Part shown: piece by piece, positions 34,163 through 37,100 of the stretch
Layout of the letters: the number at the start of each line of letters is the position of its first letter
Numbering within the stretch: position 1 is the stretch's first letter
Source of the DNA: Bugula neritina
Lineage: Eukaryota; Animalia; Bryozoa
Direction: 5' to 3'
NCBI GenBank assembly: GCA_964035545.1
Contig: OZ037770.1
Span: forward strand, 3,380,662 to 3,444,661
Length of the DNA: 64,000 nucleotides
The notes under the pieces: model-generated
The model's input: only the letters and a program-made list of their open reading frames with translations
Databases searched by the model: none
What the model was told of the DNA's origin: nothing
Made by a program: the position numbers and the translations under genes

Positions 34163-37100
34163 ATGACTGCAAGATACCAGAAACAAGACTCCAGTCAGGA
34201 GTCATCTCTCTTGATTGATAACTCAAAGGGAAGCATCAACAATTCAAATGAATTTTCAAAAATTCAAGAATTCTCAAGATTTGGTTGGAGGTGGAAAGAC
34301 TTAGGACTATTAACTGTAGTTCTGTTACTTCAGGGTGGGGCACTGGGTGTAGAGACTTTTCTTTACCCTCTGTTTCCAGAAATAGCCTTGAAAAAAGGCT
34401 TAACACAGACTTACATTGGAGTTGTATTCTCAGCCTATGAAGTTGGCAGGTTTCTTGCATCAGCTGTTGTAGGCAGTCTGGTAAGTTGAAGTTTATATAT
34501 TATTTCTAAACAAAAAACGAAAGTAATTTATTTTATTATAGCTAGTAGATCTGTAAAGCTACTAGTAGTACTAGCTGCTAAAGCTCTGATGACTCAGCTC
34601 AGAAGCATTCGTTGAATGGTTGATAACAAAGAGTGAAAATTGAGACATATACAGATAAGGTAGACTTTTACAATGCATGATTTCAAAGCACTTAAAGTTC
34701 TTTTCATTCTAGTAGCAAGAGGCATTTTTAGCTTATGAAAATATGTGTATTAAAACATGTAAACTAGCCATTACTTCATGGCAATTCCTAGCCAAATTCT
34801 ACCGCTAGCAGAGTAGGATAATCATGTTGTAAAGTTGCGTTTATACCTTCACGATTTTCGGTCAAAAATTCAATTTGGCCGGGTTGAAATTTCTCCGAGT
34901 TGCATTGCATTGTAAAAGCCACTCGTTGAAATTTTTGTACTGTGAAAGCTTAATCGGCCAATTTTAGAATAGGAGTAATAACTCCTTGTAAACATCGTTA
35001 TTTAGTTATCACTTTGGCGATTAGACAACGTACTTATACGGTAATAATTATATAGCCTACGCCTTCTCAGTTATCGCTTTTATGCTTTCCGCTTCACTAA
35101 TTCACGACGTTTACAAAGGGCATCAAATAGCTATTATGCGAGTCAAATTTCAATTTCAGAAAGTGAGCAACCGCATCAATATGATTTCAACGAGTTTCAG
35201 TTTGACTATAAAGGGGTACCCGGACAAGCATTATTAACTTAAACTCGGTACTTTTTTCAGCAGAGGTATAAACGCAACTTTAGTCTCAGCGATTGTATGA
35301 TGTATAAACACTGTGATGTTGGTGTCATATATGTATATGATGTGACATTACATTGCAGGTAGCAAAAATCACCCCAAAAACTATGTTAATCGTAGGAGGT
35401 GTCTTGTCCAGTATTTCTAGCTTTCTTTTAGGGTGAGTATAGATTGTATTTTACTATTGCAACTCAACTCATTGCAGCACTTCGGCAGAACTATAATTGC
35501 TCCTGATATATATATATATATATATATATATATATATATATATATATATATATATATATATATATATATATATATATATATATATATATATATATATATA
35601 TATCTCAATCTGTGGACAGCAGCTGTTTCGGGATTTTTCCCCTCATCAGCACAGAACAGAGTACCATGGCCCACACCTTCGCAATAGTAAAACTTATAGT
35701 TTTACTAAAGCATATTTAAAAGGTGTGTAAACTCAAGCCAGAGTGCTCAAGTGACTCTAGGGGTCACCTAGGAGTCACGAGCATTGCAAAATGCTAGCAG
35801 CTTGAGTTTGTGACCATGGTGAGAGTGCTCAATCATTTAATGTCATTGCTGAGCATTAAATGAGAGCGTAATATCTCAATCTGTGGACAGCAGCTGTTTC
35901 GGGATTTGTCCCCTCATCAGCACAGAACAGAGTACCATGGCCCACACCTTCGCAATAGTAAAACTTATAGTTTTACTAAAGCATATTTAAAAGGTGTGTA
36001 AACTCAAGCCAGAGTGCTCAAGTGACTCTAGGGGTCACCTAGGAGTCACGAGCATTGCAAAATGCTAGCAGCTTGAGTTTGTGATATATATATATTATAT
36101 ATTAGAGAAATGAATTGAGATTTGATTAATATAATGACATTCATTAATAATAGTTTCGTACACAAGATGTTGTGCACTTGTCAGATAAAATTGTCATTAT
36201 GACTCACAACTATATAATGTTGTTATAAGTAAATATACACTTACATACACTTACATTTCTTCTAATGTTTATATGCTCTAGATTTATTTCTATAGAGCAC
36301 TCTTGTAGCGCTTTATATACTCTCACTTTACTATATATACATGTATATATATATATATATATATATATATATATTTATATCTAGGCATATAACATGACAT
36401 TATATCTCACACAAAAGCATGGTTTTTATTTGACTTATTTGGTATGATGTAATACAGATATGGTTTGAACTTTAAAGTTTCCATTGTATTTGCTGATATA
36501 TTTGATACACCTACAAATCAAAATATAGATTACGGTTATTACATAATTGTGGTCATGTTTTTAGCTATGACTTAATCTCTTTCAGATTGTTTTACTATGT
36601 GGATGGCGGACTATTTTTCTCTCTGAATGTCATAGCTAGACTGATATCTGGTTGTGGAATGTCTATGGTTACTGTTTCTGGTTTGAGTCTCCTACTCAAA
36701 GCAACAGAATTCAAAACTGGAACAGTTCTGGTAATACATAGTTGAAGTATCACAGTTGAAGTTAGTATACTTACCAACAACTTTACAAATAGTTGCTGGG
36801 ATAATGCTGCTTTACATCAAACAAAATTGTCCATGCAATTGTTTTTCTATTTCAGGGCGCAGTTGAAGCAGTAAGTGGCTTTGCGAGTGGTTTTGGTGTA
36901 GCAGCTGGCCTCTTTCTCAATGATGTAAGCATTTTTAATATCGATTTTCAGGAGGTGAAAAACTCACTCATTACTGTATCTCATTTGCTCACAATGAAGT
37001 ATTTATTCTTTATTTTTTATATGTTTTCATAAGTTTATAATTTGCTCCAGTACTTTCATTGTTCATGCTCTTATAAGGCCTGTTATTTACTCTCCCACTG

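Follow-up and report, generated by a model that had tools for sequence, protein, structure and literature searches.

Relation to Described Systems

Metazoan retrozymes without long terminal repeats (non-LTR retrozymes) were defined as a class in coral, mussel, and axolotl by Cervera & de la Pena in 2020 (PMC7229834), together with the hypothesis that Penelope-like elements (PLEs) are their mobilisers. More recently, such elements have been proposed to be non-autonomous partners or derivatives of PLEs (bioRxiv 10.64898/2026.07.22.740005). A locus of the bryozoan Bugula neritina that fits this latter proposal is described here. It occupies positions 35604-36084 of a stretch of 64,000 nucleotides (C6:3380662-3444661 of the 216-Mb assembly), which was analysed as a whole and is referred to as the window. 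The locus is very probably one insertion of a young, non-coding, non-LTR retrozyme whose life cycle is driven by a PLE of the Hydra clade. As a retrozyme, it is an ordinary member of the class already described; its added value resides in a clean picture of insertion and in a candidate start signal common to a Hydra-clade PLE.

The family closely resembles the metazoan non-LTR retrozymes (PMC7229834). Its unit is a short (271 bp, within the 150-450 bp of the class), AT-rich sequence with a GC content of 42.8%, below 50%, and it bears one type I hammerhead. The unit is non-coding, the longest stop-free stretch being 45 aa. LTRs, a primer binding site (PBS), and a polypurine tract (PPT) are absent, and the flanks are plain (TA)n. 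Copies are many and dispersed, the predicted monomer RNA is self-paired, and PLEs occur in the same genome. The membership in this class advanced by the original prediction is therefore upheld by the 271-bp type I hammerhead units, their non-coding nature and base composition, and the dispersed copies. The differences from the described elements (PMC7229834) are the bryozoan host, the prevalence of single units or of fewer than four units instead of long arrays, the strict (TA)n target, and a 3′ end that lies 11 nt past the cleavage site; the family is known here from DNA sequence.

Hydra PLEs are described as short elements that bear a hammerhead, and nearly all of their insertions are in (TA)n (PMC8557442). 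The retrozyme is like the Hydra-clade PLEs of Craig et al. (2021, PMC8557442) in its (TA)n target, in the type I hammerhead near the 3′ end, and in the occurrence of 5′-truncated and tandem or inverted insertions. It also has in common with the Hydra-clade PLE of this genome the motif TACGCUC...GAGCACUCU just beyond the insertion end. Unlike that element, the retrozyme is non-coding, and 11 nt separate its hammerhead from the end, as against about 40-105 nt in the PLE.

Plant LTR retrozymes (Cervera et al. 2016, PMC4918200) measure 600-1000 nt, carry type III hammerheads within LTRs, possess a PBS and a PPT, generate 4-bp target site duplications (TSDs), and rely on Gypsy machinery. None of these LTR, PBS/PPT, TSD, size, or Gypsy traits applies to the present family. 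The resemblance is that both are non-autonomous and that, in plants, a hammerhead-released and circularised RNA is thought to be the template of retrotransposition (PMC4918200).

No report linking hammerheads or retrozymes with bryozoans was found in the searchable literature, and the family extends retrozymes and their PLE partners to Bryozoa, a phylum apparently unreported there. The family is useful for being very young (about 0.7% divergence), with clean ends, a single kind of target, and an apparently intact autonomous partner that has a common motif where copying begins. Two questions become testable in one organism: how Penelope-like reverse transcriptases (RTs) select their RNA and the site where they start, and whether the template of transposition is a retrozyme circle or a linear RNA.

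Structure of the Locus

The components of the locus are as follows (minimum free energy is abbreviated to MFE hereafter).

35506-35603, no strand: (TA)49 microsatellite (Tandem Repeats Finder, period 2, 49 copies, 100%), the insertion target, abutting the constant 3′ end
35604-35874, minus strand: full 271-nt retrozyme unit, insertion frame AUAUUACGCUC ... CACAGAUUGAG, from the repeat and from comparison with sister copies
35875-36084, minus strand: upstream 5′-truncated unit (unit positions 62-271), one mismatch to the full unit, its 5′ start joining a TA tract
35604-35661, minus strand: downstream hammerhead, 58 nt, loop 2 AAAAA, predicted cut after C35615, from the sequence and an Rfam HH9 match of 20.8 bits
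35875-35932, minus strand: upstream hammerhead, 58 nt, loop 2 ACAAA, predicted cut after C35886, from the sequence
35615-35885, minus strand: 271-nt RNA predicted from double cleavage (5′ CACAGA ... GCUGUC 3′), from length and ends
36085-36105, no strand: short imperfect TA tract between the retrozyme 5′ end and a PLE stub, from the sequence

The segments 35600-35813 and 35871-36084 form a direct repeat with a spacing of 271 bp. Its arms differ at a single base (T35629 versus G35900), which falls inside loop 2 of the hammerhead. The locus thus consists of one full unit (35604-35874) followed by a 210-bp 5′-truncated unit (35875-36084), that is, about 1.77 copies. The repeat is not listed by Tandem Repeats Finder in the window because it comprises fewer than two copies. 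The original prediction had described a 271-bp head-to-tail repeat embedded in TA repeats, and the repeat is confirmed, with (TA)49 on one side and the short TA tract on the other. The term "tandem array" used for it is only partly justified; the direct repeat is real, but 1.77 units make "array" an overstatement. The monomer that had been expected to be released, from 35885 to 35615, agrees with the predicted cuts after C35886 and C35615, which would give exactly 271 nt.

The A in loop 2 of the downstream hammerhead (T35629 on the plus strand) is private to this locus, only the window's own unit having matched the query without mismatch, and is probably a change that followed insertion. The ACAAA of the upstream hammerhead is the majority variant among the copies read.

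The Hammerhead Motif

On the minus strand, both units read CUC-UGU-UCUGUG / CUGAUGA / GGGG-A5 (or ACAAA)-UCCC / GAAA / CAG-CUG-CUG-UC^CACAGA-UU-GAG, where the caret marks the cleavage site. All core nucleotides (CUGAUGA, GAAA, and GUC) are present in both copies, as is the G10.1-C11.1 pair. Helix I is UCUGUG/CACAGA, extended by CUC/GAG across an internal loop, helix II is GGGG/UCCC, and helix III is ACAG/CUGU. The topology is that of type I: loops close helices II and III, and helix I is left open. A descriptor comprising the core and the three helices finds 4 sites in the 64-kb window, all belonging to this family, as compared with a mean of 0.01 in 100 dinucleotide-preserving shuffles. The complete type I hammerhead that had been claimed for each unit is therefore present in both copies.

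Three other hammerhead families, located in the flanks of sister loci, keep CUGANGA, GAAA, and UH, and their helices I and II are different yet complementary. This covariation was compared over four hammerhead families of the genome (the retrozyme, PLE family B, and two more), a small sample that carries no statistics. On these sequences, a fixed core combined with unrelated but complementary helices is the behaviour of real hammerheads.

Helix III consists of 4 bp closed by a 3-nt loop and is near-palindromic (ACAGCUGCUGU). The cofold of two hammerheads reaches -40.3 kcal/mol, versus 2 x -15.1 kcal/mol for the separate molecules, and contains an intermolecular helix III of 5+5 bp. On this modelling, the hammerhead probably works as a dimer. 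PLE hammerheads likewise act as dimers, and the minimal hammerheads of newt satellite 2 and of PLEs are said, in work by Lunse et al. of 2017, to cleave in this form. Dimer-acting hammerheads have also been reported for amphibian retrozymes (PMC7229834). The present motif resembles those of newt satellite 2 and of amphibian retrozymes (axolotl data, PMC7229834) in its short, near-palindromic helix III and in the predicted intermolecular pairing of that helix. It differs from them in that helix I is extended by CUC/GAG over an internal loop, and the dimer mode is here a prediction.

The strong self-complementarity claimed for the monomer is likewise found, its RNA having an MFE of -105.7 kcal/mol (z = -9.1 versus dinucleotide shuffles); the circular fold reaches -99.8 kcal/mol.

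A Young Family Inserted in TA Repeats

A genome-wide search with the monomer gives 737 first-look candidates. The 58 copies that were scored, placed on the nine largest contigs (C1-C9), are 93-100% identical, and 50 of them lie at 98-100%, the level at which the full unit described here matches its genomic sisters. The mean pairwise divergence is 0.7% (29 units), and nearly all young copies retain an intact hammerhead core.

The 3′ end of the insertions is invariant. It reads ...GUC^CACAGAUUGAG and lies 11 nt past the cleavage site. An exact pattern, ...GCTGCTGTCCACAGATTGAG followed by (AT)4, yields at least 197 insertion ends, and 41 exact unit-to-unit junctions are counted in the same way in about 33 arrays. 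(TA)n surrounds each of the 19 distinct insertions that were read, and (AT)n follows ...CACAGATTGAG immediately. Sister arrays comprise from 1 to about 4 units.

The 5′ starts, conversely, vary. They fall at unit position 62 (this locus), 32, 177, or 217, or at about position 1 with 0-20 extra bases of the preceding unit. In a census of 5′ ends by pattern matches, for which the reverse strand was used with one match per locus, whole-unit ends are over-represented: of the 91 insertions on this strand, 31 have their 5′ end at most 30 nt from the start of the unit, versus about 11% under uniform truncation. Most whole-unit starts show (TA)n joined directly to TTACGCUC / TTACGCTC. A constant 3′ end together with 5′ truncations of graded length is what target-primed reverse transcription characteristically leaves behind.

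Two further arrangements are visible in the genome. At C2:30138124-30138800 and at C3:3688123-3688770, two retrozyme 3′ ends lie 650-680 bp from each other on opposite strands; from their coordinates, these pairs suggest head-to-head twin insertions like those of PLEs. Identical 62-nt 5′ flanks precede two retrozyme insertions 15 kb apart (C3:6990374-6990435 and C3:7005714-7005775). This pair (C3:6990435 / C3:7005775) is a segmental duplication which carried the retrozyme along.

The window contains four more copies or fragments of the family at other positions. They include 14918-15048 (minus strand, 95% identity), 52337-52390 (plus strand, 94%), and 26227-26307 (plus strand, 85%). The first two are in or beside TA tracts, and the copy at 52337 is without helix III and the cleavage site.

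The Probable Penelope-Like Partner

The candidate partner was reached via a further hammerhead family, encountered in sequence that flanks sister loci. Two loci, L071 (C6:9704685-9708308) and L070, each hold an open 706-aa open reading frame (ORF) at 950-3070. The element is the following.

L071:904-3331 = C6:9705588-9708015 and L070:904-3331 = C4:16646547-16648974: apparently intact 2.4-kb Hydra-clade PLE, open 706-aa ORF

These two copies are about 96% identical to a dozen others. A 375-nt unit stands directly upstream of the ORF (L071:530-903) and is repeated at the 3′ end (2958-3331), where (TA)n follows; this is the pseudo-LTR layout of PLEs. Within the terminal 375-nt unit, the final 36 codons are accompanied by a type I hammerhead (CUGACGAG...CGAAAC...GUA) and by a tail that can end at either of two 3′ positions separated by about 60 nt.

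The ORF matches no Pfam family, and a profile search of the protein against PDB sequences gives no match. It was recognised as an RT because of a fold search: the AlphaFold (AF2) model, with a predicted local distance difference test (pLDDT) score of 85.6, is closest to telomerase TERT, with retron, DRT, group II, and LINE reverse transcriptases next. The sequence holds YRDDG and a GIY-YIG-like block, YIGISS. More than 2,400 proteins of about 700 aa, on contigs of 2.2-2.7 kb, are related to this one, among them one from the bryozoan Watersipora, and a 52%-identical relative passes the Pfam GIY-YIG model.

The Hydra clade is recognised by RWK, by DKG changed to DKT, by a CxCX5C linker, and by CxxC and CxH around E and N (PMC8557442). 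A 22-member alignment shows W38 in RMRWK; A115, D116, and K117, then T in the consensus (S in this copy); the linker C564-x-C566-x5-C572; and C664xxC667 and C693-x-H695 with conserved E670 and N684. With its size below 3 kb, single ORF for an RT followed by a C-terminal GIY-YIG-like endonuclease, these motifs, the hammerhead, and (TA)n, the element of L071 and L070 is, judged by its sequence, a Hydra-clade PLE.

Other routes to a PLE were less productive. A search via Pfam GIY-YIG returned a single locus, presumably cellular, and among 150 matches scored via RVT_1 only LINE- and LTR-type reverse transcriptases were found. A pattern search for other hammerheads beside (TA)n gave one decayed copy only.

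Remains of the same kind of PLE adjoin the retrozyme itself.

36101-36240, minus strand: decayed 3′ end of a Hydra-type PLE, 83% to the PLE 3′ region by blastn, hammerhead core mutated (CUGACAA)
36255-36331, plus strand: another PLE tail, facing the other way, 88% to the final 75 nt of the PLE by blastn, ending in (TA)n at 36332-36380

The two stubs are head-to-head, 5′-truncated tails that begin 17 bp beyond the retrozyme 5′ end and end in (TA)24. The outer ends of the pair are both in TA tracts, and one microsatellite is common to the pair and the retrozyme. The original proposal of a Penelope-like mobiliser finds support in the open Hydra-clade PLE, the same (TA)n target, the hammerhead, and the common motif near the end, all features that suggest the partnership at the level of sequence.

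Truncated 5′ ends and a constant 3′ end are also hallmarks of long interspersed nuclear elements (LINEs), whose machinery, an apurinic/apyrimidinic endonuclease (APE) with an RT, could have mobilised the retrozyme as it does short interspersed nuclear elements (SINEs). The genome indeed contains a young and abundant LINE family with many open 961-aa frames, a point that counts against a PLE-driven cycle, and its L042 copy has a 912-aa ORF with Exo_endo_phos and RVT_1. Against this stands what the retrozyme has in common with the Hydra-type PLE: the strict (TA)n target, the hammerhead, TACGCTC...GAGCACTCT at 3-4 nt past the end, and the head-to-head twin arrangements suggested by coordinates. 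Moreover, Hydra PLEs are reported in (TA)n (PMC8557442). On this comparison with the PLE, mobilisation by a LINE is judged improbable, and a Hydra-clade PLE remains the preferred mobiliser.

The LINE family is present at L042:64-2802 (plus strand) and at about 25 further loci, and two of its copies have Hydra-PLE tails no more than 1-2 kb away.

A Candidate Start Signal and the Template

The sequences around the insertion ends of the retrozyme and of the PLE read as follows, the slash marking the last base found in insertions.

Retrozyme: ...GAUUGAG / AUAU-UACGCUC-N33-GAGCACUCU
First PLE end: ...CUUCUAA / UGUU-UACGCUC-N16-GAGCACUCU
Second PLE end: ...UUUUACUA / UUU-UACGCUC-N9-GAGCACUCU

TACGCTC-N9/16/33-GAGCACTCT therefore begins 3-4 nt beyond the insertion end in the retrozyme and in both alternative PLE ends. 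For a unit of 271 nt, the probability of such a common motif arising by chance is roughly estimated at about 2e-6. In the retrozyme (z -3.3) and at the first PLE end, a hairpin closed by GCUC/GAGC is predicted. At the present locus, the motif corresponds to one feature.

35822-35870, minus strand: bipartite motif UACGCUC-N33-GAGCACUCU, a bulged hairpin in the MFE structure (z -3.3), common to the PLE

In SINE-LINE partnerships, the non-autonomous element carries the partner's recognition signal where reverse transcription starts. The signal common to the retrozyme and the PLE differs from this arrangement, as it lies 3′ of the copied end and is therefore in the template only if the RNA is multimeric or circular. 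The cleavage site leads to a similar conclusion. Every insertion keeps an intact GUC^CAC junction 11 nt from its 3′ end, so the template is an uncleaved or religated RNA and not the cleaved linear monomer.

A circle and an uncleaved multimer are not discriminated by this evidence, and AU/TA microhomology could favour 5′ joints at whole units. The evidence on the template fits the circle-templated model of retrotransposition proposed for retrozymes (PMC7229834) and gives it a concrete start site. In this regard, the motif UACGCUC-hairpin-GAGCACUCU may be a common RT start signal, read from a circle or an uncleaved multimer, and the one-unit excess may reflect a single turn round a circular RNA primed on nicked (TA)n. 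This is put forward tentatively, with somewhat less than even confidence. If true, it would be the first sequence-defined cis signal for target-primed reverse transcription by a PLE and would provide genomic evidence for a circular RNA as the transposition intermediate of retrozymes.

Proposed Life Cycle

The cycle would begin with the transcription, on the ribozyme strand, of a copy with at least two hammerheads. The hammerheads, probably paired as dimers through helix III, would cut out the 271-nt RNA, which a host RNA ligase would close into a circle. The Hydra-clade Penelope-like RT-endonuclease of the same genome would then nick a (TA)n tract and recognise UACGCUC...GAGCACUCU, the cDNA starting 3-4 nt 5′ of this motif, at AUAU, on the TA-primed target. 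One or more turns of the circle, or of an uncleaved multimer, would be copied, and the end of the cDNA would be rejoined to the TA tract, often via AU/TA microhomology. The present locus would be a 1.77-turn product of this process. Both of its hammerheads are intact, so that the locus might in theory supply the 271-nt RNA. Being probably antisense to the host gene, it would need its own or a neighbouring antisense transcript or promoter.

RNA Data and Contrary Evidence

Retrozyme sequence is found in 19 public runs from seven studies. The evidence at the RNA level consists of assembled contigs, from which strand, ends, and topology cannot be read; such contigs of four RNA-labelled runs hold the sequence. 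An oligo-dT metatranscriptome (X10) contains a perfect 220-nt contig, 35795-36014, that runs across the cleavage site. In two small, organism-labelled runs, X2 and X3, which are RNA by guess only, the unit is covered and its unique flanks are uncovered.

Several results weigh against the reading of the locus as an active, PLE-driven retrozyme. Transcription, cleavage, and circularity are predicted only. Relative to the flanks, the retrozyme is covered in the deepest run, X1, to about the depth that its copy number in DNA would produce, which fits DNA carry-over. The covariance-model check suggested with the original prediction failed, as no Rfam hammerhead model reaches its gathering threshold in the whole window. 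The best match, obtained on a 75-nt slice, is Hammerhead_HH9 with 20.8 bits (E 0.0018), the gathering score being 52, and a search of 900 nt at E<=10 gives AT-repeat noise only and no hammerhead. Despite the sub-threshold score, the HH9 alignment spans the whole core and the same helices. The canonical monomeric fold of the isolated 58-mer, at -11.6 kcal/mol, is less stable than its MFE structure at -15.1 kcal/mol. With regard to the start signal, only two of the three contexts give the predicted GCUC/GAGC hairpin, which is absent from the MFE structure of the second PLE end. A blastn comparison of the retrozyme with the PLE finds no similarity beyond the bipartite motif, and descent of the retrozyme from the terminal unit of this PLE is therefore not claimed. 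Finally, the units within an array are identical in two arrays, and in the others they are as divergent as unrelated copies; this ambiguous pattern neither supports nor excludes rolling-circle copying.

The size of 271 nt, the compact, branched, and highly paired fold (z -9.1), the hammerhead, and the presence of the sequence in RNA-labelled runs of several studies are also what would be expected if the copies were cDNA footprints of an autonomously replicating circular RNA, viroid-like or delta-like, that belongs to the animal or to an organism associated with it. This explanation is very improbable. The ribozyme occurs in one polarity only, the descriptor having found none on the plus strand of the unit, and there is no ORF; genomic copies with two hammerheads suffice as a source, and DNA copy number accounts for the depth in run X1. 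Just as implausible is a satellite or segmental repeat spread at the DNA level by recombination or slippage in TA tracts, to which these microsatellites are prone, with the hammerhead as a fossil: the mere 1.77 units here and the obvious segmental duplicate at C3:6990435 / C3:7005775 would suit it, but at least 197 dispersed insertions with one invariant 3′ end and graded 5′ truncations, a divergence of 0.7% that shows a recent burst, and a hammerhead core intact in nearly all young copies speak against it.

Host Gene Context and Further Hammerhead Families

The original prediction had placed the insertion antisense within an intron of a transporter gene, taken to be SLC18B1-like. One candidate exon of this gene lies close to the retrozyme, which would occupy the intron that comes after it.

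35359-35432, plus strand: candidate host exon bounded by AG and GT, with a membrane-helix-like translation, from the sequence

Exon-like plus-strand pieces on either side of the locus, 34133-34486 and 41867-42112, give weak matches to MFS_1 (E 0.01-0.02) that are below the cut-off. The candidate exon and the flanking MFS_1 matches speak for the placement, and the sub-threshold level of the matches limits it; as far as the sequence goes, the insertion is probably intronic and antisense to a transporter gene.

Two more hammerhead-bearing sequences are present in the flanks of sister loci. A second PLE family, at L064:8281-9999 (minus strand), encodes a protein 44% identical to that of the first. 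It carries a minimal hammerhead (CUGAGGAG...CGAAAC, with a helix III of about 1 bp), and its 3′ end lies in (TA)n. A third hammerhead family, at L065:7945-8040 (plus strand), has a helix I of 8 bp and the sequence CCUGAGGAG...UGAAAC...GUA, and ends about 40 nt later at a TA tract beside a (TG)n repeat.

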